A DNA stretch of 47,168 nucleotides from Klebsormidium nitens. Its lineage: Eukaryota; Plantae; Klebsormidiophyceae. Where the stretch lies: NCBI GenBank assembly GCA_000708835.1, contig DF237599.1:1-47168 (forward strand). Direction: 5' to 3'. Below are positions 1 through 35,072 of this stretch, piece after piece (the first letter of the stretch is position 1; each line of letters opens with the position of its first letter). Both the position numbers and the translations under genes were made by a program. The notes under the pieces are model-generated. The model had not been told where the DNA came from. It did no database searches and worked only from the letters and a program-made list of their open reading frames with translations.

Positions 1-348
1 AGGCTCGGACCCCGGCGGCGTGCGTAAGGGGGTTTTGGAACCGTGAACTTTCGTGCGACATGTGAGACCGTTCGCAATTCTGCCGCGCCTAGTTGCTCTC
101 GTCTTGGAAGCAGGCTTGTCTGAGACCTTCGGAGGCTGCCAGGCGGGCGGCCGACCCGGGCCCGGCCGGGGTACGGTCAGACTCGAAGTCAGACTGCCCG
201 GAAGTTGAAAATCTGTGAGGCTGGGTTGCAGACTGCCCGGAAGTTGAACCTGAAAGTCGGCCGGGCCCCGGGCAGAACCGGCGCAGAACCGCGCGCGAGG
301 CGACGACTGCTTTGACGTCCTCGTCCATGGTCTCCTGGCCGGCGCCAT
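1..348 (-). CDS. Possible first exon of a divergent gene running off the window
   Basis: An ATG at 348 opens a stop-free frame to position 1 (MAPARRPWTRTSKQSSPRARF..), with an in-frame repeat (QLPGSL twice). No homology recognised. Confidence 0.25.
   Translation of the reverse strand, partial: MAPARRPWTRTSKQSSPRARFCAGSARGPADFQVQLPGSLQPSLTDFQLPGSLTSSLTVPRPGPGRPPAWQPPKVSDKPASKTRATRRGRIANGLTCRTKVHGSKTPLRTPPGSEP
190..248. repeat. 20-bp direct repeat, period 39
   Basis: CAGACTGCCCGGAAGTTGAA at 190-209 and 229-248. Confidence 0.95.
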
Positions 349-578
349 GGCCGCCTCTTCTTCTCCGGCGGTCCCCTGCGATTCAGCGTAACGCTTTTCC
401 GGGAACCTGCCTTCAGAGCGCCACACGCGCGCCCTTCCTGAGCTGAAAGGTGCAGAGGCTGCGGAATCCTACCTGCCGGGGCTGTCTCATCAGAGGTGTG
501 GAGCATCGCGCTGGTGACTGCTGGACGAGCTCAGGACGACACGATCTGGTGGGGCGAGCGTTCTGCGGGGCCGGGGAC

Positions 579-3500
579 ATGGCGTCGCTCCATAAAGAAC
601 CGCTGGAGATGGCCCTGGCGAGGGCCTTTGGGGAGGGAGGGCCCCTCGCGGAGGTGTATGTTGGAAAGATGAGATTCTCAAAGCTGATCCTTGGGATTTG
701 CGGGAAGCTAGAGCGACTGAAAACGTTTCACGCAGACGAGATTGCGTCCATCAAAAAGGGTTTTGAAGAGGAGAAGAAGGAACTGCTGGGCCTCACTGCG
801 GCCGCCAAGGGACAGCCAACCACCGCACGCCAAGTGGAGGCCCAGCCAGTCGCCAAGACTGGCGTGGATGAGGCCAGGCTGGCTGGCAGCGCCGCAGAGG
901 GACGACCTGGGGCGGAGTCCGCGGATGTTGCAACGCTACGCGGGCTGCAGGCGCAGGTAGCGGAGCTGCGCGCAGAGCTGGAGGCATGCGCTGCGGCGCA
1001 GGAGGAGAGCGTGACGGGCATCCAGGTGGTGGCCGCGCAGGGAGCCAGGTGCGGCAGGAACACGTGCAACACGGCACTGCTGAAACCCATTGAAGATTTG
1101 CGGAAGCGTGTATGAATGATCAGATGATGTGCAAAACGAGTTGGTTGTCGCAGCAGCGGAGGGTTGGTGTCTCATGCTCCCACCTCCTTCAGAACTTTGC
1201 GAGCAGGCTATGAAGCAAGAAGAGGGCCTTTATTGAACATTGCATGAGTCAAAACGTTTTTGTAATAAAGCTTGCCCCAGTACTGCAAGCTTCTTTGGCA
1301 ATTGCTTCTCCTGAAAACGTTTGATGGAAAGGTGGCACCCAAAACGTTCTATGAGGTAAGCAGCCCTGAAAACGTCTTGCTTGAGGGGCAGTCTTTTGAA
1401 GGCTATGATTGCAAACCAGCAGAAGAACGTTTCTGTTTAGTACCAGCCTTGAGAAAGTTTTTACAGGACTCCTTTTGTGAAAACGTTCTGATTGAGACAC
1501 TCCAAGAACGTTTCTTTGCGGAGCAGCCACTAAAACGTCTTCATGCAACAAAAGCCAGCCCTAAAAGCGATTTGAAAGGCAGTCAGCAGCGCTTTATCAA
1601 GACACAGCCATGGCAAACCTGCAAATGATCGGGCAGAGTCAGCTTGAAAGGATCTCATAAAGAGTCAGCAACAGCTTGGGTGGAGACATCATTCAAAACG
1701 CTTTTGTAAAGACATTTCGTCCATCTTTTGACTCTCTGCTATTCAACCCTAGTAGTTTTTGCAGTGCAGGCAAAACGCTTTGTTGGGGACAAGTTCGAAA
1801 TTGATTCAGTTGGCAGCAGTCTTGAATTTTGCTTTCTCCATGACATGCAGTCCCCAGAAACGTTTTCGTTGAGAACAAGCGCTCAAGGCGTTCTGCCCGC
1901 ATGCGCGCCCTGGAAACATTCTCTTTGAAGAGATGACAGAGAAGCTTGGTTTGGAGACGCCAAGTCCGAACGACCTACATCCATTGATGTGCTTGTTAAA
2001 CGTTTCGGTTGAGTAATAGCCCAGGAATCTTTTTTTGATGGAGAATCTTTTGTGTCCCAATACAGCCAGCCTGGACAATTTCGTCTTGAGCGCCTGCCCT
2101 CAGCCCCACTGTGTGCTTGCAAGCTTGTCTCCTCTCTCCCTGGACGTCTCCCATCCGCCGCTCTGCCTGCTCGCTTCTCTGTGGCCCTCTTCCGCATGCT
2201 TGCGGCTGTGCTCTGGCAAGGCTTTGCTTCATTATTTTCCCACCCCTGCTGCCTTGCCCTGGCCCTCTGCCCTGTCCTCCTCCGCAGGCTGCTCTGCTCG
2301 TCAGGCCCTGCTGATTCATGCCTAAGAGGGCGTCAAAACCCTCGATTGGACGGATTTGCGTCCACTCAAGCGCAAGGCTCGGGGCATGCTCTGGCTGGAG
2401 TTGGCAAGGCTGTATAACCGGGCCTGTCTTGCTTCCTGAACATTTTGACGACATGCTTGCGTCGCGATTGCCAGAGTAGCTCCGCCTGAGCCGTCTTGAA
2501 GGGTTTCTTCTCCTGGCTGGGCGTCTCGCTGCCACGGGTGGAGCTCAAACATGAGAGGGGTGTGCCAAGATTCAGACCTGTGTTGGTTCTCGTTCGGTTT
2601 CATGACCACCAAAGTCCGATGCGCATCTCTGTCGCTGAGGTGGACATCAGAAGCGGGTCCGATTGTCTTTGCTCAATTTGGTGCCGCTGATTGTCCCTGT
2701 CTGGGGCAGGTCCTCAAGCGACACAAGCGGGCCAGACGTCTTCAAGAGCACTCGTTTCAACCCTGTGTGTTCAAGTCTGCCGATCCTCCCTGGTCACCGA
2801 TTGTTGAGAGACAATGGCCGTCAGGACCCTTCGGCGGTTCCTTCCGGGGTTTGCTTTCTTTCCTGAGCCCATTTACCCCTTCGCTTTCAGACCCAGGACT
2901 GCCGACTGTCGCCGTATTCTGCAACCTGAAATCGTCAACGAATCGTTCTTGTGCAGGGACTCACGCTGGGTCTTCCGAGCCTCATCTCGTTTGGACCCAT
3001 TTGTGAAGAAGAGGCTGGTGTCTGTCCCCCGACCCAGGTCCTCTTGCTTTTCTCGCACCCTGGCAGGCCTACACTCCGTGTTCAAAGTGGACGCTAGCTA
3101 CCTCGAACCGCCCACTTTCTGGTGCATCGTATTTCCTGCTCGATCTAATCACCGCCTCCCCCCTCCTTTCCGTGCAGGTCTGGCTGCCCATCGTGCCAGG
3201 CGGTGAAGGCCACGGTGGGTGCCTGGCGCGCGGCAAACGGGCTGGCGGGCGCGGGCGAGACGGTGGCGAGCGCGTACGCGAAGCTGGACCTGCGCGACCG
3301 CGAGGCGCTGCTGGCCATCCTGGACCTCGAGAAGGCCGCGCCCGCCGCGGGGCCGCACGACGCACCCCCCGTAGGCGACGAGCTGACAGCGGAGGGCCTG
3401 CTGGAGCGGATGACCGACGCCAGTGCGGAAGGAGTCAAGCTGCGGGGCGGCAGCGCGGGCGCGGAGCGCGACGCGCGGGCGGCAGACGGGGACGTGGACG

Positions 3501-5755
3501 CGGGGTCGAGCCGCAGCAGCGACGAGACGTGGAGCTACGAGGAAGAGCAGAGAGGGGACTCGCGGGGGAGCGCGGCGGTGGCGCAATTGGCGGCGCTGTC
3601 GGAGGCGCTGGACGCGGAGGCGGAGGCGCTCAATCTGCGGCTGACGGCGGAGCGCGGGGTGGTGGGGGCGCCCGAGAGGAGCGACTGGGCGCAGGAAGCC
3701 AAGGAGGCGCGCGTGAGAAGGGCGGCCGCGGAGGCGCGTGCGCGGGGGGGCAAGGCGAAGGTAAGGGGAGGGAAAGACCGCCTACGCGGGGACGAAGGGG
3801 TTGCTGGGGTCCATCCGTTGGGCGGCTGCCCTGTCTCGTAAACCTGGGCACGCAAGGCAGGGGTATGAGGGACGAGAGCCCGACTGTGTCGGATTCGCTC
3901 ACTCCCGTCGGTTGACGGACGGGCGTTGCAAGGCTCTCTGATTGAAATCTAACACAAAAGCCTTTTCCTGACTCAGCTCTGTCGTGGCCGTGGTGCAGGC
4001 TGCCTCGAGTAAGCCTCTGAATGAGCCTTCGCGTCCCCCCAGCCGGCTGGGCCGCCTGCCCGTCAAGACCGCGCGCTACTCAGACAGCGAGGTACGGCCC
4101 CACGCTTCGGGCACTACACTGCTCGCGGACCGGCCTCGTGCCTGCCACGTTAGGCAGCCTCAGCGTTCTTCGCAAGCTGCTGAGGACGCTTTCTTAAATG
4201 ATTGGAATTGCGCGCAACAGCAGATTGTTTTTCAGAAACTCCTTTGCGTCTTTGCGTCCTGCAGCAGTCAAGCCCTCAAATGATGAGCAAGGGAAGGCGC
4301 CGCTTCGGACGCCCCTCCCATCCATCTGGGTATTGACCCCCCCCCTCTCTTTCGTGCAGTACGACTTCGAGCTGGAGGAGGCCCCCCCTGCGCGCAAGCG
4401 GCCGCGCCCCGACTCGCTGCGCCCGCTGGAGGAGCGGCCCAGCATGCCGCCGCTCACGCCGAGCCCCACCTGGAAGCTGAACGCCCAGCCCGACTGGAAG
4501 CCCGCCGGGCCGTCCCCGCGCGCCGTGCTGGGCCTAGCCTCGCCGCAGGCAGCGCGGGGTGGAGCGGGGAGCCTGCCGACCCCGCGCGTGACCAAGGCGT
4601 TGGGAGGCGCCGACTTTGTGCGCGAGCTGGACGCGTTCTGCAAGCCCAAGCACGGCAAGGACGGGCCGCGCTTCGAGGGCAAGCTGCGAATCTGGAAGAG
4701 CGGCGAGGTCGTCATGTTCTGCCGCTGCGACGCCTGCACCGCCAAGCACGGTGAGCACCTACCCCGACAGCCAGCCGGGCGGCCGCGGGGCTCCTGGCGG
4801 CTGCGGCTTGGCGTTTCAGTGGTCCGGGGAACGGGCGAATGTTCGTGTAAACTGAACGTCTGCGATATGAGCTTTGACACGGGTTGAGGGGATATTCATT
4901 CTGTCACATCATTGTGTTGGACGGAAGGGCCTTCTCTCGATTGCGTGTTGTCCTCTAGTCTGACGCCGGTGGGTTGTGCGCCGCAGGGCCAGAGGGCGTG
5001 GGCATGTCCCCGGTGGAGTTCGAGGTGCACGCGGGCCGCGGCGCGACCAAGAAGTGGCGCCACAGCATCTGGGTGGCCTACCCGCAACTGCATGGCCCAC
5101 CGCATGAGTCCACCATAGAAAAGTGCGAGGAGCTCAACGGGGGCAAAAACCTCACCCCGGTCGGGCTTACCGCGCCCGGGGCCGCCACGCCCCGACCGCC
5201 GCCGCCGCCACCCGCCATGCAGCGGCACGCGGACCAGCTAGTGCAGGTGAGCGCTGAGCGAGAGCCCAGCACGGCTCGTGGGGGTAAGAAGATCTGAGTC
5301 TTTCGAAAGCCGTGAGTTCGAAGGGAGATTACCCACTGGTCCAAAGCCTCTGCGACTTTTCTTGGTAGAAGGCGAAGCTTTGAGACACATTGGGTCCGGC
5401 TCATTACCTAATTGTTATTACTGTAGAGCTTTAAACTGCTACTCCAGACGTTTGATTCGCCCCCCTGACCGTGCAGTGTAAATCGTGTGGGAAATGGCGG
5501 CGCTTCCGGCGTGCGGTGCCGTCCGACTTTGCGCGGGCGGCGCGCGCGGCGGCGGACCCCGACTGGAAGTGCGCGGACCACTACGACGCGAGCGTGGCGA
5601 GCTGCCACATCCCGGAGGAGCGGTCGAGCCGCAACCGGCGGCCCGGGTGCGAGGCGTGCTACTTCAGCGAGCTCGGGTGCGCCAAGTGCCGCGACTGCAC
5701 CGGCTGCAATTACTGCCGCCCCGCGCAGCCGCCCGAGGTGGAACTGCTCGAGTGA
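579..5755 (+). CDS. ULT1: ULTRAPETALA-like SAND-domain chromatin protein with long N-terminal extension and C-terminal CW-like/ULT Cys-rich domain (paralog 1, ~691 aa)
   Basis: Six exons join in frame at GT/AG sites: 579-1048, 3178-3760, 3999-4091, 4360-4750, 4987-5246, 5477-5755 (phases 2,0,0,1,0; 2076 nt). SAND region: FEGKLRIWKSGEVVMFCRCDAC..MSPVEFEVHAGRGATKKWRHSIWV. C-terminus: HADQLVQCKSCGKWRRF..DPDWKCADH..SCHIPEERSSRN..GCEACYFSELGCAKCRDC. Both segments resemble Arabidopsis ULT1 as I recall it. The symbol means homologue, not proven orthologue; the start codon is tentative. Confidence 0.85.
1251..2010. repeat. Degenerate ~27-28 bp tandem array with AAAACGTT core in intron 1 of SAND paralog 1
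   Basis: The core A(A/G)AACGT recurs at 1251, 1314, 1341, 1369, 1424, 1480, 1505 and 1532, with weaker copies to ~2000. Units include CAGCCCTGAAAACGTCTT and CAGCCACTAAAACGTCTT. Confidence 0.65.
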
Positions 5756-7317
5756 CAGGCGGCACTGGCGGGCCTTGCGAGGGACGGGGGAATGTATAGC
5801 GGTGTGTTTGTCAATCCCGTGTAAGGGTTGCCCGTCAAAGGTAGCGGTCGCTAATCTGGAATTCATAAATGGTAAAGTTAAGAATGTCGACACTGGCCAG
5901 TTCGTTGACCCCTTCATCGTAGGCAGGGCTATCCGCTTTGGATTGGATTGCGTTTTCCAAGCTTCTACTGAGTAAGTAACATACCATGGTCTATAATCAG
6001 GCTCTTGCAGTGAGGTTATTTTCGTCAATCTCTAGGCAGATTGTTGCATCGACTTCTGCACTTATGATTGGCCAGATTTGTCAGCATGCGGTGCCTGCGG
6101 TTAGGCAAGGCAATACCTGCAGTCGGCCGGGCAGTCAGAATCTTGATGTATGCCGGGACAAGAGACAAGCTCACTTGATAAATATCGCCGCACTGTCTAC
6201 GGCCCATAAAACCAGGACCTTTGTTTGACTCGCATCTTGCAATGGTTACCGATCGTTGCGGATTGATTGCAAGAGCTCATGTATGCCGGCGCCGCAAGTT
6301 CCCAGCTCAAGAGCACTGCATCTTTCTCATGAAATTACTTTGTCCTCAGTCCTACGTTTTCAACGCCAGCTTCATTTATGGAAAGGTCCTGACATCGTAT
6401 CGTTTCCCGCGCATTCGGGAAAAATCGCAAGCTATAGCCCTTGTGTGAGCAAATCCCGCAGCATACATGCAGAGTCCTTGACGACAATGCGTCAGACTGC
6501 TTGTTTCCCCCGCATCGTTTAAAGAGTGCCTGACCGTGAAGATAAGGGTGGTGCGCGCCTAAGACCACCTCACCTACACGCCAAATCTTTCCCTCAGGTC
6601 ACTATGTGTCCTCATTCAGTATGGGCTGGACAATTGATTAGCGAATCGGTTGGGCTCTGTTGCCGCTATAGGTGGCTGTTCACCCTACCTCGTGTCACAC
6701 CTTGTATAGTAGTGCACAACATGATACATCCGCTGCGCAAATTCGGAATTGCAGTAGGTACAGTAACTTAGTCTTGCCGTATCACTGTGACTGGGGGATG
6801 TTGATACGCGATCCTTGATCCTCAAGGCCCCCGCCAAATCCTAGAGGCCACGTGTCACTCCAGGGTCGCATCGGAGCGTCACGTCAAAGTGTTCAGCGAC
6901 CGTTTGTTTCAACCGCTACAACACGGACAACTGAATGGCAGCACTGGCCGAGGCCAGGCGGTGACAAGCTCCAGATGTGACCTGCGACCCTCTCAATGTT
7001 GGCAGGGGGGAGGCGGAGCAGCCGCGCAGACAGGCCGACCAAACCAACACACAAGATTGCAATCCAGTCAGGCTGAGATACAATCATTGATCAACCCGCA
7101 ATCACCAAATAGATCGCAAGACGTGAAAGGGGCAGGGAGAGATTGCTGAACACTGTGTTGAGGAGTCAAGCTAACTATGTAATTATTCAGGGCGCTATCC
7201 CTCGAGAGTTCATTCTCAATTGGTTGACGCAGGAAAGGAGAGGGGGCGCATGTCCTTCCGCTGAGATTCTGGACCCCTCAGGAGCAGCGCCTATCGACAT
7301 TCAGACTGGAAAGCACG

Positions 7318-10300
7318 ATGCTGCAGGACGCTGTGCATTCTTCAGGGTCGCTGCCTCTGGAAGTGCAGCTTGCGGGGATGTTCAGCCGCGGTGGTCTTTT
7401 GGAAGACGCCCGCCTGGGAGGCATGCACGTTGGCAGACTCATGGCTAAAATCACCGCAAGCTTTGAGAGTCTCAAAGAACACCAGGCCGATGAAATCGCA
7501 GCGCTTAAGAGAGGCTTTCGACTGGAGATTGAGAAGCTCCTCGGTGACATTCCAGGGGACAGAAAGGAGACAGGACAGGATGTAGCGGGTTTTTGGCATG
7601 ATGAGTTGGAGACGCGAAGAAGCCACGAGGGATCTGATCCGTCATCAAACACAGAGGAGTCTTCAGAACAAGCCATCACTACCAATTGCACAGAGACAGT
7701 TTGTTTGCAGAACAACGAGATCAGCGAGTGGGATCCGCAGGACTGCACGGAGCTTGCGATGGTCTGTTCAGATCCACCCGCTGAGCACCGAACGATGCAA
7801 GGAGTTGACAGGTTGGTTGTTCAGAAGAGCATGCTCGTCGTCTCGAGCTTTTGACTAAGAATGATATCCCAGGTGACATGGCCGATATTGACCTGCTTCT
7901 GAGGGCCCCCTTAGAGGGCAACCATTTGGAGACTCACCCTCAGACACTCATACGCAGGTCTGGAAGATGCGCACCATCTGCTTACAGCTGTTCTCAGCAT
8001 CTAGCAAGTTACCATGACAGTCTATAATAATTACCTTAAGAGACATGTCAATCGTTTCAAGAGCATTTCAGAAGCAATTGGACGTTGTCTGTCAAGCAGA
8101 TTGACAATCGCATCCTGTAAACGTCTCACTTCTGAAATTTTTTCGTTTGCAAAGTGATCGGAATTCGGCAAGTTGGTCACTGCGCCAGCAGGTTTCTTCG
8201 CTTCGAAGGAGCGGTGTACTACTCTTCGCTTCTTTTCTACCAGCAAACGAAACCCCACGAAGTGAGAATGAAATAATAGCTCGGCGCAGACAGTTCGGCA
8301 GGAGTTGCAGTAGGCACCAAGCAGGCTAAGTTTTCAGGCCTTCACATGCGCGAGGTAGTAAACATGTACTCTGCACAATCATTTCAGCTCCAATTATTCT
8401 CGTCTCACCCGGAGGTTGCTTTGAGTCAACAGGACTTCTGGTCATCTCAGATTCATCCAACTTGAGTCGACAGGTACATCTCGTTGGCAGAAGTAGTAGC
8501 ACTCAATTGAAGCTTGCGTTCATTATGGCGCTTACAGGCTTACGGTTCTGCAGAATCCTGACTCGTAGTTTATGCATCCTCTGAGACGGTCTTTAAGGAG
8601 CAGTCCATGCGCTCTCACTGCCGCTTCGTTCCCTAGCAATGGCGTGGTTATCAGCTTGAAGGGACATCTCCTGATTTCTGCGACCCCTGTGCAGGTCGCC
8701 CCCCTTCCCAGCCCCCCTCGCCGGCACCTGCAAGCGCGCCTGGGACAGCATGGAGATGCTTCAGCGCACACACGGTTCGCACTGCCACGTGGATCAGCCT
8801 GTGAGTGGAGACCTGCCTGGGTGGGGCCAGGGCCTGTTGTCCCCCGCCAGCGTGCTCCCGACGGCCTCCTTCTCCGAGCAGTCCGGCATGTCATCGGAGT
8901 GGGGGGCCGAGGCGCGAGACACCGCGGGCAGCAGCGCGTGGGGCCCGCGGTCGGAGGAGGCGGACCGCGAGAGCGAGCGGCTCAACCTGGCGCTGCAGCC
9001 GGAACAGCGGATCGACGACAGCCAGGACGCGCCCTGGCGGAAGGAAGCCGCGGAGGCCAAGCGCAGGTTCGAGGACAGCCTCGCGCAGAGCTGGGCGCCG
9101 GAGCAGGCCGCCAAGGTGAGGCGACACGACTGCTTGGTCTGACCGTGAAGCACGACTTTGGCTTGGTCAGCACATGTCATTTGTAGAAATGACGAACTTC
9201 TTCTCTTCGGAGTCAGCGCCTGATCATCTCTGGGATGCGAGTCGAGATACTTCCACCGGAAGCTTTTCACCTCCGAAATGCCCTCTTCTCAGTCTCCTTG
9301 TTCTTCTCGATTCCGAATCCTCAGCCTGGTGTCCCAGATTACTCTGCCACTCACGAGCCGCAAACAACCACGCGGAACGCCCGGCCTTGGCTGCTCGCCT
9401 TCACCCCCGACCCCAAGCCCCTTCACGGCCGCCGTCGTCATCCCGGCCACTGCTCCTTCCCCCGCGGCCAAGCGCGTCCGGCGCAGCCAGAGTCCCTTCC
9501 GCGACTACCCCAGCCCCGCGCCCGAGCAGAAGCTTCCCCCGCGGCGGCCACGCCTCTGTTCCCGAGCATAAAGCGCGCGCGCACCAAGCGGCTCGTGGCG
9601 GCCGTCCAAGTGGCGGTCCTCGCACTCCCCTGCCCTTTCCCTCCCACCGCCGCCGAGCAGCGCCTGCCGCCCCCGCAGCCGCCCGTCGCCGCCGATCACG
9701 GACAGCCGCTGACGTCACCGGCTGCTCCGGCCTCCCCCCGGTCGCCGGCCCCTTCCTCGCTGAGCCCGAGCGCGTTGCTGGCGGACGAGACGGTGCACAA
9801 GTACCAGGCGTTCTGCAAGCCCAAGTCGGGGACGGAGGGGGCCAACTTCGAGGGGACGCTGTGCGTGATGCGCAGCAAGAGGGCCATCGTCATCTGCGCC
9901 TGCCGAGACTGCGTGGAGACGCATGGTGAGCAAACAGGAAAACCGAGATTGCAAATAAACTGCGAGGCGGCTTCGGAGTGGTGCTAACTTCGGTGTTCGT
10001 TTCAAAAAGAAGCTGGTGAGTGGAAGATGAAGGTAGCAGATGCTTAACTTTTGCGAGTCTTGAGAAGATGGAGAAGCCCTTTTGTCTGAACAGCTTCGCT
10101 TGAGATTTCGAATCCATTCGACAGTGGTGAAAGACTGTGAGGGCCCATTTCAAGTTGATCCAATTTGGACAAGATCGAAATGCCTTCATGTCCATGGCAC
10201 TTATGCGGTTCAAGACCGTGTTCTGACAATAACCCTCGCTCTGTGCTTTTCTGCGCCAGGCGCGGCGGGTCGCGGTCTGTCTCCGGTGGAGTTCGAGGCC

Positions 10301-10525
10301 CACGCGGGGCGGCTGCACCACAAGAAGTGGCGCCAGAGCATCTGGGTGCGCCTCCCCGCCGCGGGCGGCCCCCGCGAGACGACCGTGGAGCAGTGCCGCG
10401 CGCTGCAGGGGGGCAAGCACCTCGTCTCCGTGCCGGCCGCGCCAGACGCGCCGCCCGTCAGGACCAGCTCGCAAGCGCCCGGCCGACTGCGGCACAGCGG
10501 GAGTTCCGGGGTAAGCACGACGTGA
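7318..10525 (+). CDS. SAND-domain ULT-like protein, paralog 2 (no recognisable C-terminal Cys-rich domain)
   Basis: Exons 7318-7811, 8695-9115, ~9325-9925 (acceptor uncertain), 10260-10525 (or spliced at the GTAAGC donor at 10511). N-module PLEVQLAGMFSRGGLLEDARLG..QADEIAALKRGFRLEIEKLLG is homologous to paralog 1. SAND: FCKPKSGTEGANFEGTLCVMRSKRAIVICACRDC..LSPVEFEAHAGRLHHKKWRQSIWV. The phase-2 intron after the N-module and the phase-1 intron inside SAND match paralog 1. Confidence 0.75.
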
Positions 10526-12775
10526 ACTCAAGCTGTTGATAGGATAGTATGAAAAGATGTCCCCTTTCTGTTGAATGGATCTGGTCTCTTAGATGATCAA
10601 CGTCGAGACGAGCCTCGCAAATTGAGGAACCTCTTGCTTGTCGTGCGCCTTTTTCAAGGAAAACCTCGCTATCTGTTTTTGGTTTAGCTTCTCTCGGACC
10701 ATGCTCGGTTGCATCATTCATGTGTAGCCAAGCGCAGGTGCTTTCGAATCCTAGCGCTCCCTTCTCGTCCATTCATCTCTTTTCCTGACTTTCCGGATTC
10801 AGGTATCACGGTGCACTACTACGCGGAACTCGGCGAGCACTTTCCACAAGGCGGAGGAAGGACCTTCCAAAGAGTAATCAGTTGTTGGGAAATGAGTAAG
10901 GCTACGTTGAAGGGTGTCAGAGAAGTATTCCGATTTGCATTGATGTATTGATCAGATTGAAACTCTCAGAAAGAACAATTTGTCGTTTGCCTGTAAGCCG
11001 GCCATTAGGCACTGCTGTTCGTTGTTCTTGACAGATCGTTGCTCGTACTGCCAGCACTGGATTACAGCAGACGGAGAAAGCGGCAAAAGTATTGACCTTT
11101 TGAGGTTAGCAGAGTTGGCACAGAGGTTTAGGATTGTGGATCAGGACGGATTACACCAGGTGATTGACGGCGTGGTTTAAGATTAGGACTGCTGGATTAA
11201 GATCGTGATTGTCAGGTACTTTGTAGGTTTCTACCCTGTTACGACGTTGTCAAATGACGTGACATGATAATAATCAATTGTTACGACTCAATCGTAGACA
11301 AGGCATGTGCAAGTTTATCCTGCTTGAAGAGCCTCACAAAGTGCAACGTGAAGGACGCATCTGAACGGCCGTTCCTATAGCATAATCCTGTAATAATTTT
11401 CACTTGGAGTTTCGCGTCCATCGCCTAAAGGCTATGCAAGTCAAATGTTGTTGCGGATGGAGCGATGAATGGTTGCTGGCTTCCGGTTGCCGTTCTTGTC
11501 TTATCTCGACTATCCGTTTTCATACACGTCTACTTCGTAAAGAATTATACTCCACAGAAGGGCCACTGAGCTAGCGCTCCCATTGGGCAAGTCAAGCGAG
11601 CCGCGACAAGCACAGCTTTTAGCGCAGCTTGTCGAACTAAGAACCTGCGCACTTGGTTGTGGAAGATACGGCTACATTCACGAACCGGGCATCCCTTTCT
11701 CCTGTATTATTTCTTCATGTTTTGCACTCGTTCCGGCACAGCCCTAGAGAGGAAGCATTGTGGACACAGCCTGCGTTGGGACCAGAGGGATCAAAAGGGC
11801 GTCGCTTGACGTAAGCGCATGAATCTGGAAAATGAATGAATGACGTTTGGAAGCAATTACTTGAGCCCAAGTTTAACGATCCGCAAAACCAGCTCAAAAT
11901 TAGAGGACCCTCGGAGCTCGCGAGGGTCGCAGCAATCGTGAAGACAAAGAACTGGCTTGCATCGACTATTCCTCGCAGAATGAAAGGGTTTGCCGCGAGG
12001 ATGTCTTCCGAGCACATGGATAATCTTAAGGTTCCAAGGGGAACAACCTGAAATATAAAATGCATGTCTATCGTTTCAACTTTGAAGTAAGTCCAAACGA
12101 CTGACAATCAATGAAAAACTGCAAGAAACTTCTTTGAAACCTCTGTCTGGTTGCATGTCATCTTTGCGCTGTTAAGCTAACCGCAACTTTCCTAACTTGT
12201 GGGTAAAGATTCTGACCAGCTCGGGCATGAGTCCCAGCCACGCCAGGTCCTTGCCTCGAGCCCGTTCTCTTGGACTTTCCGAATGAGCGCGCTGCTGCTG
12301 GTCCAAGGCGGTACGCTCTAGGCCGGCGACCGTCGATGCGGCCAACGCGATACGCTGCCGCGGTGACGCGACGGCTCGCGCCCTGCTGACATTGACACTG
12401 ACACTCAGCAGTGACACCGAAGACGAGATCACGGCCCCACAGTGGACTGGTGCCATGCAGAGCGCGGCGGCGATATGCGGTAGCGAAGTCGTCGACATTT
12501 TCAAGTTGGTCTTGGAACATTCAAGCCTTCTAAGATCTTAGCTCCAAAAGCTGGGGTGCAGTCTTACAACTCCACGGTTGCGAGCATGTCTCTCAGGACC
12601 TGCGGCAGGTGTCAAATCAAAGGCGCACCACCTAAGAGGCAAGCCTAGAAGCTTGGAGGCGTTCACAGCTGCATGATGCTCCAGTGAACTTTTTGTTTCC
12701 GAGCATTCAGTTTGGCTACTAGGGTTGCTGAACTTAACATTGCTACAGTAGAGGGTTTGCAAAGGGCGCTTTACC

Positions 12776-15700
12776 ATGGCTCCCCGTCGTCTGCCTGCAG
12801 ATCTTCATGTAAAAAGTCCTCCCTCCAATTCTGTGCGAGGTAACGATCCGCTGAAGAACGCGTACCTTGGAGATCTGCACTTCCGCACGCTTCTGGAAGC
12901 GATAGCAGGCAGGCTGCAGTGTCTCGAGTCGCAGCACGAACAAGACGTTGCATGCCTGCAAAACAGCTTCGCGAGGGAGAGGGACGGGTTGCTTGCTCAG
13001 CTAAGCCGCCAAGATGGACAGGGCAAAGCCGAGGAAATGATGATGGGGGTTTCTGAAACGAAAGGAGTCGCTGGAAAGGATGAGGTCACGCAAGAGAAAG
13101 GGGAAAGAGGCTCTGAAGGGGCGACACGTCAAGCGATCGAAAGCAGTACCGTAAATCACAGACGTTCATCTCGTGGAACAGATCCTGACCCTTGGGGAAA
13201 AGAAAGCATTGCAAATAGAGCTTTCCCGCAAGAGGGTGAGCAGGTTTTCAGCGGTAACGTGACTGAAGCTCCGTTTGCAATAGAAGTCTCGAAAGAAGCA
13301 GAGCCGGCCAAGGTGATATTCGAGCCGTCCGAGTGGAGAGCAAAGGAAGACGACGATTCAATGCACGAGAGCAAGACACAAGGGATACACAATCAGGATC
13401 AGTCACTGAAACTTCTACGGCCCTCTTCGCTGGTGCAGGTCGGAGAAGAAAAGGCTTCAGGCAGACTTCTTGATTCCTTCCTTTCCAAAAATAGCACAGA
13501 GTTGGTGCAGGTTGGAGGAGAAAAGGCTTCAGGCAGACTTCTTGATCCCTTTCTTTCCAAAAACAGCACAGCAAAGCAAGCAGTACATATGGACTCGCAC
13601 ATGAACGCAGAAGCGTTATTGACAGATCAAGGAAAGGGCACAGTGCCTGTGGCTCTGGATTCGACCGAGCCTGGACCTTATTCTGCCAGCCAGTTCGACG
13701 TTGCAGTGAGCCAGATGCAGGACGCAGCCCGCAGAGAGGCAGTGAGGTGCACCTGCGTGCATGCAGGCTTCCTGAGCCAGCTGGGGCGCCTGTCACAGCA
13801 GAAAGCCAGGTGAGAGGACGCCCGACGGATTCAGTTTTTCATTGCGCCCCATCATATATTTGACTTCTGTACTCTGACGCGAGGACGACCATCGTTGCAA
13901 GATACGATGGCGTGCTCCTGTTTGACTCAGCAAGAAGGAATGCCAACATGGACAAGGCAGAAAGTAGTTGTTGTTTGCAAAGCAATGGTTAAGACTTAGT
14001 TTGCTTTTATCCGCATGCTTGATTGTGGAATTGCCGTTTTCAAGTCGGGTGAAACATTGTGTGAGGGTGAGACAAACGATCTCTGTCAAGTTTATTTTCA
14101 TTTGTCTTATGCTTTTATTCATTTTCAGATCCTGACGGAAAGTATCTGGTGCGAAGCTCTTTAAACCCGTTCTAATATGACGACATTTCGAACTTGTGTT
14201 GGTAAGCATGTTCGGCAGCTGAGCGTTCCATCCCTGCAGCGGTCGCTGCGCGGTGTGCCGCGAGGTGGAGCGGAGCGCGCGGTCGTGGCAGGCCCAGAGA
14301 GGGGACTGGCGGGACGACCCAGGGGCGGCGGAGAACGCGGCGCTGGCGTTGGTAGACATCAAGTGGAGCAGGACAAGCGTAGAGGCGATGCTGCTCCGCA
14401 TGAAGGCCCGGAACGCCAACGGAACGGCAGCAACTGGCGAGGGGGGTCAACGAGCACCGCTGACGTGGACGGATCACGGCGAAGACGCACTTCCTGGAGC
14501 TGACATGAGCCTCTGCAGCGATCAAGATCAGGGGCTGACTGTCAAGAGCCTGAGCCAAGGCGACGCTTCGGGTATCAGGGAATGCGCTGAAATGAAGGAG
14601 AGCAGCAGAGACGTGAAAGACAGCACAAGCACCCCTGAGGAACTCGAGACAGAACAGCAAATCGATGGCCTGGCTCTAAATAGTGAGGTTCTCTTGGAAG
14701 GAGAAGGAGCGCAGCCTGCGGAGGACAACGAGACGGTAGACGCGCGCGAGCGCGAGCGGTGGTCGCAGCAGATGCGCGAGCTGGCTGCCAAGGTCAACAG
14801 AGAGGCCCAGGGGTGGCAACGGTACGCGCGAGCAGCAGGCGCAGCGGCGGTGGGGAAACGGACGGCGGCAGGAAGGCGTGGCAGAAAGACTGTGATACGG
14901 AAGCAGGAGGAGATCGCACCAACGGGGGCAGTGACGAAGCGTGCCAAGGTGCTGCGGCAGGGGCCCCGGCAATCGTGGAAGCGGCGGGAGGCGCTGCAGG
15001 CGGCGGAGGAAGAGGCGCCGCGCGAGGAGCCGCGAGGATCAAAGATGCGCGGGGGATCAGGGAAGCGCGGGAAGAAGAGCATGAGGCACCACGCGGCAGG
15101 AAGAAGGGGCAGGAAGCGGACGGCGAACGACGCGGAGGTTGGGGGGACCGAAGAGGTGAGTAGCCTTCCGAGCGAACGGCGGGGGGTGCATTGCGCAGTC
15201 TCTTGCCGCGCCGCCAAAGGAATCAAGCATCACCAGAACTTAAATATCTTGCCGTGCGCCGCGGTGCTGACTTTAAGATTGTGAATACCGTTATAACAAG
15301 GGCAGCAAGCCAGTGGGGCTCGTGACGTGTACTACCAGTAAGGAGCTGCTCATATCAAGAAAGGAACTTTGCTAGCGCTAGGGATCCTGAAAGCTATTTA
15401 CAGTCACATTAAGGATCATCTTCTTCCAGGATCACGTGCTGACTACGCTTGACGGACCGGGGCCCCTTGCGACCACCGCGGGCGCGCAATCCCCGCTGAA
15501 AAGATTCGCGGGTGCCAGGACAACGGAGGTTAGCCGTGCACATCTTAGTCTTAGAAGCTGTTCCTCGTTCCTTGATTGCCAGTACTTATGTCAGTGTTCT
15601 TCATGCTCGAGATCCACGTCTACTCGAAGGCCTGCAGACGCTTGGTGGGTCATTCTATGCTTCGGTGGGTCCGGCTAACCGGAGCTGCGCAGCGACTCAC

Positions 15701-16752
15701 TTGGCGTCCGTTTCTCGTGCAGGTTGCAGAAGCACCTGCCGCCGTCTTCGATCTGTCCCCCGTTCCCGGTAACCCCCCCTCTTCTCCCAGGCATGCCCGC
15801 TTTCAAGCGAGGGCCGGTCCTGCTAGCCCGCTTCCACGTGGCCTGGCCCCGCAGACCCCCAGTCCCGTGAGAGAGCCCGCGAGGGGTCCGCCGGGCGGGG
15901 GCGACGTCCCCCCCGAGGCGGCGCTGAGCGACGCGCTGTGCCTGGAGGAGTACCCCGTGTTCTGCAAGCGCAAGCCGGGGGCGGCGGAGGGCGGCGTGCT
16001 GCCGGGCAAGCTGCGCATCTGGCACGGCGGCCGCGTCATGGTCGACTGCCTCTGCGCCGACTGCACCCACAGCTGCGGTGAGGGGCTGAGCTCTGCTTCA
16101 CTGACGGCGGGACTAAGTTCAACCCCGATGATTGAATCCTGCCAATGGATGCATAGAGACTCTCACGATGGGCATGGTGCTCGAAGCACGATTATTTGGT
16201 TCTTCCTTCTGGATCTCGACGTTGGTACGCGAAAAAACACGCCAAAAAAATGAAACGCAGCTTGGATACAAAGATGTTTCCGACATGGACTCTTGCTCAC
16301 GTCGATAAACCTGCCGGGCTTCCCTAAATGTCTGCCGTAAATGTTGTTGCCCTACTCTTTTATGCTCAGTGCTGTCCTTTTTTACTAGGCCCTCCCGGCG
16401 CACGTTGAGGATCTGGCAGTCTTTCAAAGAGCCGATCCGTTCTTCTTCTGCCAATCCAGCCCGTTCGCGCATCTTTTGGGTAATCTCTACGCCGTGCCGG
16501 TTGCTTGGTCTGACCGCCACTTCTCGCGTCTCGTTTGTAGGGCCTACCGGCCTGCGGATGTCCCCTGTGGCCTTCGAGGCCCACGCGGGGCGCGCGGCTG
16601 CCAAGAAGTGGCGCACCAGCATCTGGATCCGCCTGCCCGCCACCACGGCGGACGGGCCCCCGCGCGAGTGCACCCTGGACGACTGCCGCCAGCTGAGCAA
16701 GGGCAGAAGGCTCGTCCCGGGCGTCACCGGGGCTGCGATCGGAGGCGTTTGA
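12776..16752 (+). CDS. SAND-domain ULT-like protein, paralog 3 (~871 aa, ends shortly after SAND)
   Basis: Exons 12776-13809, 14240-15155, 15430-15528, 15723-16077, 16541-16752 (phases 2,0,0,1; 2616 nt). N-module DPLKNAYLGDLHFRTLLEAIAGRLQCLESQHEQDVACLQNSFARERDGLL; CxxC (GRCAVCREV); basic NLS-like GRRGRKR tracts. SAND: FCKRKPG..LPGKLRIWHGGRVMVDCLCADC..MSPVAFEAHAGRAAAKKWRTSIWI. Confidence 0.82.
13431..13570 (+). repeat. 72-bp in-frame tandem duplication in SAND paralog 3 exon 1
   Basis: LVQVGEEKASGRLLDSFLSKNSTE / LVQVGGEKASGRLLDPFLSKNSTA; copies start at 13431 and 13503. Confidence 0.95.
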
Positions 16753-17489
16753 CCGGTCGACGCTCTATCGAGGCCTTAAAGTAGACACAGCATGTGTGCC
16801 GCCACGTTATTACTCACCAGCGAGCTTGGAAATCTTAGAAGAATTTGTGCCTTTGCAGACACCGAAGCGGTCACAATCTTTGGTCTATCTTGTCGCTCAT
16901 AGTATGGACGAAGGTTTCGTTGATGTCGGGCGATTTCTTACAGACTTCAAGCCAGCCAAGGTATGCTACGTTGAAGTCATGGCGTTTCTGCTAGATGATC
17001 GGTCGAGAGCGTTTTGTGCTACGTGCGAGAACATTTAGGACTCAGCCGTTGGCTTTGTGTGCATGAGCTGAACAGAGATCTACTTAAGCCATGTCTTGCT
17101 GCATAATGATGCGGCCACTCTGACGGAACCAATTGTAAATATTGCAGCATGACTTCTGAAGTTTGATGTGCAGGAGCCTACATATGAACGTTACAGCACA
17201 TGCTGATATCGTCAATCGCAATGTTGGACAGTCCCCTGAACCCGATGCAGTTTCACCAAGAAGTTATGCATGATTGGACGATACAAGTTCTGTATTATGT
17301 AACTTCCATATGACATGAGCCTGTTTGTGCCGTGTACGTGATCCAGCTTCTTGACTGTGCGAAAGCCCCGCATCCGTGTTAAGATTGTGCGGATGACTAA
17401 AGAAGTCTGCTCTAATAATGAACGACACGCAATCATATATAAACAGTGGACGAATGGGTGGACTTGGCCTCACGTCTACTTCCTTCTCG

Positions 17490-34059: not shown

Positions 34060-35072
34060 CTACAAACGGATCACTTGGGTGCCTGACAAACTCTCTAGCA
34101 AAGATGTCACACTCTGCGGATCCAAGTACCCTCCTCCTACTGCTTCCTGCCCAAGGGCGACTTTCTGAACCTTCTTAAACTGCTTCACGTAGTACTCAAG
34201 GTTGATCGCTTGCCAATCAACAAGGGTGAGGGAGCAAAGCTCGGGGGCCTCCGCTGGGGTCGTTTGAAAACGGAAAAAAGGACTCGCCTTGAGCGCAAAG
34301 ACTTGCAGCCTAGGGGCAATGATCGTCACTAGAGTATCCCCTTTTGCATGAGACACAACCAGCTTCGTCAGGTTGGGGCTCCGTAGCTCTTGAAACTGAA
34401 TATCCACCCCTGCCAGCTCAAGTTCCTGCAAGGCCGGCATCAAGGGGAGAATCCTACCACATGTTAAGGTGAGTCCCCCCAACCTGAGTACTTTAAGCTG
34501 CTCCATACCTTGCAAACCCATGTTGATTGGGCATGGGTTTGTGACATTGGTGAGACGACGTACCGGGCCGTTTGCCTCTGACTGTTGCAATGATTGAACC
34601 TGCTCATAGCTCACAACGGTCAGGACCTCGAGCTGGGTGCAGGAGCTGAGAAGTCCAAATAGATCTGTCCAACCATCTGGTGACAGAGTGTTCCCTCGGA
34701 CCTCAAGCAGAAAACTGCAGAGCGAAATCTGGGCCTCTTTGAGCACCTTCACCAAACAAGCGAGCCCATCTCTGCAGTTTAGCAGGTAAAGGAACACGTC
34801 TGTAAGCCCTGTCGAATTGCAGTCCCGCATGAAAGTGCTCGTATCCTTGACCTTGGGAGAGTAACGGTCGTGGCAACGATTTCACACATGCACCTTGAGG
34901 TGCAAATCTGCCTGAAAAGCCTGTTCACCACCTTCAAACCTGCCACTTCCTTCATGAACTTATGTAGCGCTGGTACACTCGCAAATGCATGCTGATGTTG
35001 GCATGCTTTCCTTATTATTTTCTCGGTGAGCCCGACATCAAGCTCCTCAAAGAAGCATCTCCCGCCCGCCAT
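34060..35072 (-). CDS. F-box-like / leucine-rich repeat (RNI-like) protein
   Basis: N-terminal FFEELDVGLTEKIIRK..LKVVNRLFRQIC resembles a degenerate F-box. The downstream ORF 34830-34060 has LRR-like units (CTQLEVLTV, MEQLKVLRLGG, MPALQELELAG, SPNLTKLVV, APRLQVFAL, APELCSLTL). The two parts are in different frames; the join (short intron or frameshift near 34850-34930) is unresolved. Confidence 0.6.

Follow-up and report, generated by a model that had tools for sequence, protein, structure and literature searches.

ULTRAPETALA1 (ULT1) is a plant-specific Polycomb/trithorax switch, and published accounts of its origin disagree. The ULT family has been called angiosperm-only (PMC7947857; PMC3880041), curated classifications that sample the alga Klebsormidium nitens place it in ferns and seed plants (PMC5737466; PMC6786969), and GenEra (2023) reported a putative K. 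nitens homologue, GAQ90507.1, to be accepted "if reliable" (PMC10037820). The existence of a ULT-like gene in K. nitens is therefore not new (PMC10037820). The locus described here, positions 579 to 5,755 of a 47,168-nucleotide stretch of K. nitens DNA (assembly GCA_000708835.1, contig DF237599.1, positions 1 to 47,168; the whole stretch is called the window), to which the accession GAQ90507.1 could not be mapped, gives the GenEra caveat a concrete, transcribed and conserved gene. What it adds is a transcript-backed gene model, a CW finger that retains its Trp, a probably reduced set of zinc sites, a missing loop for Polycomb Repressive Complex 2 (PRC2), an N-terminal module and tail-less paralogues.

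The closest described proteins, ULT1 and ULT2 of Arabidopsis (PF23292 plus PF23293), have ~235 residues in which a SAND domain, a linker, a CW finger and a Cys-rich zinc region follow one another. According to the ULT1 structure preprint (10.64898/2026.06.16.732580), the C-terminal domain is made of a CW subdomain (133-194) and a Cys-rich subdomain and holds four zinc ions. In place of the otherwise invariant CW Trp stands E148, buried and salt-bridged to K193, F139 is the sole cage aromatic, H135 and H163 aid zinc binding, and R189 and R192 contact the H2A-H2B acidic patch. In the SAND domain, 89-RKWK-92 contacts DNA, and 42-HRYGD-46 together with K103 contacts the CXC domain of SWN (10.64898/2026.06.16.732580).

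The algal protein has the same order of SAND domain, linker, CW finger and Cys-rich zinc region, its C-terminal ~230 residues being colinear with ULT1 residues 29-232. We give a probability of roughly two in three to the reading that it is a proto-ULT, that is, a nucleosome-binding SAND-CW protein homologous to ULT and less derived. On this reading it would be a nuclear chromatin protein whose C-terminal third is a distant ULT homologue, composed of a ULT-type SAND domain, a Pro-rich linker, a CW finger and a short Cys tail. By analogy with the ULT1 structure, the SAND domain would contact DNA through a KKWR motif and the EER-S-S-R helix would anchor the zinc domain on the H2A-H2B acidic patch, and such predicted anchoring would make the protein a nucleosome binder. 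It is reasonable to infer that a ULT-like protein originated before land plants.

The locus is a real, expressed six-exon algal gene for a 691-residue protein. GC-rich exons, spliceosomal introns and the related loci described below fit the assignment of the window to K. nitens. All exons lie on the + strand, and all five introns (1049-3177, 3761-3998, 4092-4359, 4751-4986 and 5247-5476) run from GT to AG. The coding part of exon 1 (579-1048; residues 1-156 plus 2 bases) is set by the open reading frame (ORF), its first ATG and transcript contigs over 300-1045/1048. Intron 1 follows with 2129 nt and a joint present in four runs, then come exon 2 (3178-3760; residues 157-351), which is Ala/Glu/Arg-rich and without a Pfam domain, exon 3 (3999-4091; residues 352-382) and exon 4 (4360-4750; residues 383-512 plus 1 base), which from ~4606 on encodes the first half of the SAND domain. 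Exon 5 (4987-5246; 2 bases plus residues 514-599) contributes the second SAND half, the Pro-rich linker and the start of the CW finger (RHADQLVQ, 5223-5246), and exon 6 (5477-5755) the CW core, the Cys-rich tail and the stop, its end (5720-5755), read from the sequence and the transcript contigs, comprising the C-terminal 11 residues and TGA. The original prediction, made from the letters of the window, had six exons joining in frame, and they do: the junction of exons 1 and 2 splits a codon into 2 + 1 bases, the exon 2/3, 3/4 and 5/6 junctions are all phase 0, the final base of exon 4 is codon position 1 (G|GG) with exon 5 supplying the other two, and phase arithmetic on the coordinates gives a coding sum of 2076 nt, or 691 codons plus TGA. 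The ATG at 579, which is kept in the orthologues, is the earliest in-frame start downstream of a stop at 447-449. The transcript contigs extend the 5' untranslated region (UTR) upstream past position 300 and put the end of the 3' UTR at ~5913-6013. Inside the transcribed 5' leader lies an upstream ORF of ~40 codons (ATG at 327, stop at 444-446). The letters GTGCAG end both exon 5 (5241-5246) and intron 5 (5471-5476), so that this junction can be drawn at seven positions, with Val-Gln encoded either way.

The transcript evidence consists of contigs from four public runs, belonging to four studies, aligned to positions 300-6200. In runs X1, X9 and X10, a single contig per run, 2.5-2.65 kb long, contains the six exons with 0 mismatches and with the introns exactly removed, and run X2 has the same junctions over two contigs, linked at intron 1 only via a 30-letter overhang; between them, the contigs carry the five predicted junctions. 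Intron coverage is 20-100x below exon coverage. The runs, with assemblies of ~40 Mb, had only been guessed to be RNA and are taken as such because introns are removed at GT..AG sites. Since the contigs run from exon 1 through exon 6, the N-terminal part shares one mRNA with the SAND and zinc-finger exons. The N-terminal extension had been predicted as a part of this protein, which the contigs bear out, with a length of ~400 residues, which falls short of the ~460 residues that precede the SAND domain. The unusually long first intron (2.1 kb) and the lack of a known domain in exons 1-3 might suggest an annotation artefact, in which the N-terminal exons are a separate upstream gene, or a pseudogene. 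This explanation was tested, was not supported and is most improbable, given that single contigs in three runs cover exons 1-6 with exact GT..AG removal, that the exons follow one another in the same order in the paralogues and at two orthologous loci, and that the ratio of nonsynonymous to synonymous substitution rates (dN/dS) is below 0.35 in every exon.

The orthologous loci were found with a profile of the N-terminal module, which returned four ORFs on two contigs, L003 from a Logan assembly and L004, 116 kb long, from a JGI metagenome, each of which has an orthologue with its six exons in order plus a downstream paralogue. Exon 6 is the best-conserved exon (95% identity to L003, 83% to L004), and exon 1 reaches 84% and 60%, respectively. 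All 11 Cys, the Trp, EERSSR and the His preceding the first Cys are invariant across the three algal taxa. The dN/dS of the exons for the SAND and zinc domains is 0.10-0.20, except for exon 4 against L004 (0.29), and that of the N-terminal exons is 0.27-0.34 (exon 2: 0.32-0.34). With values below 0.35 in every exon, the whole protein, including the extension, is under purifying selection.

For comparison with real ULT sequences, a metagenome scan with a pattern taken from the window's own motif (C-G-K-x-R-R, 17 residues, D-P-x-W-K-C) yielded a spliced Arabidopsis-type ULT1 cDNA (L002; ORF 277-987, 237 aa) and its genomic copy (L001). Both are host plant material inside environmental "metagenome" records (JGI Ga0006556J51387_1018697 and Ga0041059_1001323). 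The ULT set consists of the best 120 of 376 ULT1 relatives, all angiosperm; a hidden Markov model (HMM) was built from 101 ULTs, and the residue alignments contain 28. The four motifs that the original prediction had quoted are present, GKLRIWKSGEVVMFCRC in exon 4, HADQLVQ/CKSCGKWRRF over the exon 5/6 junction, and DPDWKCAD and EERSSRN in exon 6, and the ULT1 strings that it had set against them agree with the real ULT1 ORF (L002:277-987), with small differences in the RLRVF segment.

Its central observation, that a SAND domain precedes a Cys-rich zinc domain in colinearity with ULT1, is confirmed with significant similarity by BLASTP, HMM and profile-profile comparison. In BLASTP, ULT1 29-65 matches the end of exon 4 (18.9 bits, E 0.007), 65-97 matches exon 5 (35.8 bits, E 4e-8) and 142-232 matches exon 6 (42.4 bits, E 1e-10). 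Among the 1439 six-frame pieces of the window to which the 101-ULT HMM was applied, exon 6 reached 39.4 bits (E 3.7e-11) and exon 5 had an E of 1.7e-5. The SAND second halves of three genes, this one and two paralogues downstream, reached 20.9-22.7 bits, and nothing else in the window had E <1. Profile-profile alignment (hhalign) of algal exon 6 with the 28 ULT tails gave a probability of 98.6%, E 1.4e-15, over 79 columns. The original prediction had named failure of the C-terminal region to hit ULT profiles as a part of what would speak against it, and the region does hit one: zf_ULT1 (PF23293) scores 38.2 bits on exon 6, with a cut-off of 27.

The SAND domain (4606-5087, + strand; ~residues 465-546), delimited by Pfam, by BLASTP to ULT1 29-97 and by the alignments, holds a CxCxxC motif and the KKWR putative DNA-binding motif and is split by the phase-1 intron 4. 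Because the family scans were run exon by exon, each SAND score is that of half a domain: SAND_ULT1 (PF23292, cut-off 25) gives 15.3 bits at the end of exon 4 (4600-4749) and 20.7-22.8 bits on exon 5, on which generic SAND (PF01342, cut-off 22) gives 21.3 bits, true ULTs scoring only 14-16 on the latter model. The algal SAND first half aligned with ULT first halves by hhalign with an E of 8e-5 over just 20 columns. The equivalents of C63, C65 and C69 are kept in the alga, preserving the CxC..C motif, and KKWR replaces ULT1 89-RKWK-92, a conservative change. The two genes also share an intron position, or nearly so. In Arabidopsis ULT1, a phase-1 intron interrupts codon D72, which belongs to the SAND loop that follows the CxC...C strand, and algal intron 4 is in the same phase and the same loop, 1-2 codons away. 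The other introns are unshared, lying before C142 in the alga and after K180 in Arabidopsis ULT1. The VARL/RegA SAND proteins of green algae resemble the K. nitens protein in their FE.H.G....K.W..S(I/V)W core, in long non-conserved flanks and in tandem paralogues, but differ from it in that the latter has a CW finger and a ULT-like CxC..C, VARL proteins being set apart by their description as SAND-only (PMC10137558).

The core of the CW finger (5477-5632, + strand; exon 6 residues 1-52), supported by zf-CW, alignment A2 and hhalign, contains four CW Cys, the canonical Trp in CGKWRR, a second Trp in DPDWKC and the arginine pair of EERSSR. The ULT1 positions singled out by the structure, in this region and in the SAND domain, are invariant or nearly so among the 101 ULTs. 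Invariant in the 28 aligned ULTs and also in the alga are the four CW Cys, K147, R149, R150, W171, E188, R189, S191 and R192, and H135 and F151 are kept as well, with a Cys2-Cys3 loop of 27 residues as in ULT. EERSSR aligns with EERGSR of ULT, and R189 and R192, the acidic-patch arginines, do not vary among ULTs or among the algal orthologues. The alga differs from ULT in having Trp at 148, Asn at K/R193, Leu at F139, Phe at C159 and Ala at H163. Leu at 139 is also found in 3 of the 101 ULTs, whereas Trp at 148 occurs in none of the 28 aligned ULTs and is not among the four commonest residues there in the 101; Trp at 148 and Asn at 193 are present in all three algal taxa. The algal finger is like a canonical CW finger (PF07496; ZCWPW1, PDB 2E61/2RR4), with which it shares the four-Cys core, the Trp of CGKWRR, W-x-C and an IPEE past the fourth Cys. 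It is unlike that finger in having Leu in place of the first cage aromatic before Cys1, in a Cys2-Cys3 loop that is 7 residues longer than that of ZCWPW1 and equal to that of ULT, and in being preceded by a SAND domain and followed by a 7-Cys tail. Because the canonical CW Trp is kept, part of a methyl-lysine reading surface may survive.

The short Cys-rich tail (5633-5719, + strand; 7 Cys) resembles part of the ULT Cys-rich subdomain. Six of the ten ULT tail Cys are in register with algal ones, and these (C198, C207, C210, C212, C215 and C218) are invariant in the 28 ULTs and the alga. Adding the tail to the CW core raises the zf_ULT1 score by ~14 bits, from 24.0 to 38.2. Against the ULT HMM the tail alone reaches 5.1 bits after bias correction, a value reached by 12 of 2000 composition-matched shuffles, and 14.0 bits without the null2 correction, reached by 0 of 2000, so that its likeness to ULT exceeds composition. 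Judging from the residues, the 7 Cys and the H135 equivalent would bind two zinc ions in the algal Cys-rich part, versus three in ULT1, and the whole C-terminal domain probably has three zinc sites versus four, that is, one fewer.

In consequence, the interpretation attached to the original prediction, that of a full or complete ULT architecture, is partly supported. The order and the homologous segments hold, and the completeness does not: the CW finger looks canonical and has its Trp (zf-CW 36.4 versus zf_ULT1 24.0 bits), 7 of the 10 tail Cys are present, without C159 and H163, the PRC2-binding loop is not conserved, and on ULT-specific Pfam models the algal protein reaches about a quarter of the score that true ULTs have (zf_ULT1 ~38 versus ~145 bits).

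Several results weigh against a proto-ULT and are best considered together with the possibility of convergent architecture, according to which an algal SAND protein independently gained an ordinary CW finger and a generic Cys-rich C-terminus, the likeness being one of shared domain families. On both ULT models, true ULTs reach ~143-154 bits, and they have no zf-CW match, a gap that places the algal protein far from the ULT cluster and nearer to generic families. On exon 6 residues 1-50, the generic CW model is preferred (zf-CW 36.4 bits, cut-off 27.5, versus zf_ULT1 24.0), zf-CW still giving 32.7 bits on the whole exon. The tail by itself matched no Pfam model, and its bias-corrected ~5 bits are weak. 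An unrelated protein of the representative library (P0001, 1635 aa) with eight LGCSKCRYSKTGCAKCR repeats passes zf_ULT1 with 31.6 bits, so that passing this threshold is not very specific. Five likely ULT zinc ligands, C159 (near-invariant in ULTs, 100 of 101), H163 and three of the ten tail Cys, are missing. The tail can also be aligned in a second way, GCEACYFSE against GCELCRFSE of ULT1 (215-223), which competes with the first, and an AlphaFold2 (AF2) model of exon 6 built with the 28 ULT tails as alignment was unreliable (mean pLDDT 55.9, tail <50). The HMMER and BLAST comparison of exons 4-6, suggested as a check along with the original prediction, gave the ULT-profile and ULT1 matches described above, but when the 92 aa of exon 6 were compared exhaustively by HMMER with 1.84 billion representatives, a set so large that a relative scoring 35-40 bits cannot reach significance, no ULT was among the matches with E<=0.001. 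Two repeat-rich proteins were all that passed this threshold, and there was no self match. The dating of ULT to ferns and seed plants would require, under common descent, losses in bryophytes and lycophytes. Convergence can further draw on the about equal scores of exon 5 on generic SAND and SAND_ULT1, on that euphyllophyte dating (PMC5737466; PMC6786969) and on the many SAND architectures of green algae (PMC10137558).

Convergence would nevertheless have to produce colinearity across ULT1 29-232, a CW loop of identical length, the common H135, E188, R189, S191 and R192, the same spacing from G-C into the tail, the SAND CxC..C, a same-phase intron in the same SAND loop and a tail that beats 99.4-100% of composition-matched shuffles, and we consider it an unlikely explanation, although the main rival. 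A word-index search with exon 6 found no match within a length window of 51-161 aa, which leaves out ULTs, the look-alikes of exon 6 in the ESM Atlas were generic CW clusters only (<=0.91), and a PDB sequence search, over chains that did not include ULT1, gave a weak CW match to ZCWPW1 and weak SAND matches to Sp100/SP140. Foldseek found no PDB match for the exon 6 AF2 model. The P0001 motif LGCSKCRYSKTGCAKCR resembles ELGCAKCRDCTGCNYCR of the algal tail and, from its sequence, may be a separate, undescribed small zinc module.

A further set of differences concerns the contacts of ULT1 with PRC2 and also counts against close kinship with ULT. Of the HRYGD loop, G45 alone is kept in the algal SAND domain, Y44 and D46 are lost, five residues are inserted, and K103 is lost too (alignments A3 and A4). 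In the 101 ULTs, D46 and K103 are invariant and Y44 is found in 99, with Phe in the other two. A true orthologue with full ULT function, including the role of PRC2 (E(z) CXC) cofactor, in which the differences were neutral drift plus an added N-terminus, would explain the same domain order, the retained DNA-binding and acidic-patch motifs and the strong purifying selection. It is, however, improbable in view of the unkept CXC-contacting residues and the loop insertion, the one zinc site that is probably missing, Trp at E148 and Asn at K/R193. Since the residues that grip the CXC domain of PRC2 are absent, the role of PRC2 cofactor was probably acquired afterwards, on the branch towards ferns and seed plants.

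The proto-ULT reading can be taken one step further, although tentatively. The protein could be a surviving stage on the way from a CW finger that reads methyl-lysine to the zinc domain of ULT, in which the acidic-patch anchor is present, the Trp reads a histone tail and PRC2 is not contacted. If true, nucleosome anchoring would predate land plants, and the PRC2 role would have been added by remodelling of the SAND loop and gain of a zinc site. The locus suggests how the odd zinc domain of ULT may have arisen from an ordinary CW finger. Among the features of ULT, it marks as old the placing of SAND before CW, the motif for DNA contact and the arginines for the acidic patch, and as derived the absence of the CW Trp, the additional zinc site and the loop that binds PRC2. 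Sorted in this way, the order of events becomes testable with a few recombinant domains, and the algal protein is a natural contrast to the new ULT1-PRC2-nucleosome structures.

The ~460 residues upstream of the SAND domain have no counterpart in ULT1/2. They would be made of long helices and disordered acidic/basic stretches, a Klebsormidium-type addition common to the two tail-less paralogues. Their best-defined part is a conserved helical module (600-812, + strand; ~residues 8-78), which the alignments find in the three tandem paralogues and in the orthologues. In the AF2 prediction, a long helix at 33-78 (pLDDT 85-98) is separated by a disordered stretch from a second one at 112-155. Exons 1-3 have no Pfam match, and the exon 1 module has no relative in Pfam or the ESM Atlas. 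Exon 4 carries a basic stretch, RKRPRPD (4393-4413, + strand), and a conserved PPLTPSPTWK motif. As a guess, the extension might serve self-association or partner recruitment; a homodimer prediction with two copies of residues 5-80 scored 0.06, which speaks neither for nor against self-association.

Downstream on the + strand, tblastn, Pfam and the ULT HMM identify the two tandem paralogues, both with the same N-terminal module and a SAND domain. Paralogue 2 (7318-10880) ends in a short tail without Cys or zinc finger, and paralogue 3 (12777-16753) has its stop right after the SAND domain. Their SAND domains score equally with that of the main gene on the ULT models. Exon 1 of paralogue 3 contains an in-frame tandem duplication of 72 nt (13431-13571; two copies, 92% alike), equal to 24 residues. 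Farther downstream, an ORF on the - strand (34060-34830) has a weak match, below the cut-off, to PF24758 (F-box-associated LRR; 22.6 bits), and the other long ORFs tested between 18 and 45 kb match no Pfam family.

Within intron 1 of the main gene, eight of the ten AAAACGYYT matches in the window (1.6 expected by chance) are clustered at ~1250-2020. They are degenerate repeats of the type AGCAGCCC-TGAAAACGTCTT, spaced by ~80 nt. The orthologous intron of L003 (4738-5503) holds seven of the nine matches of its locus (0.5 expected), and the cluster may either have a conserved regulatory function within the intron or be an old repeat.

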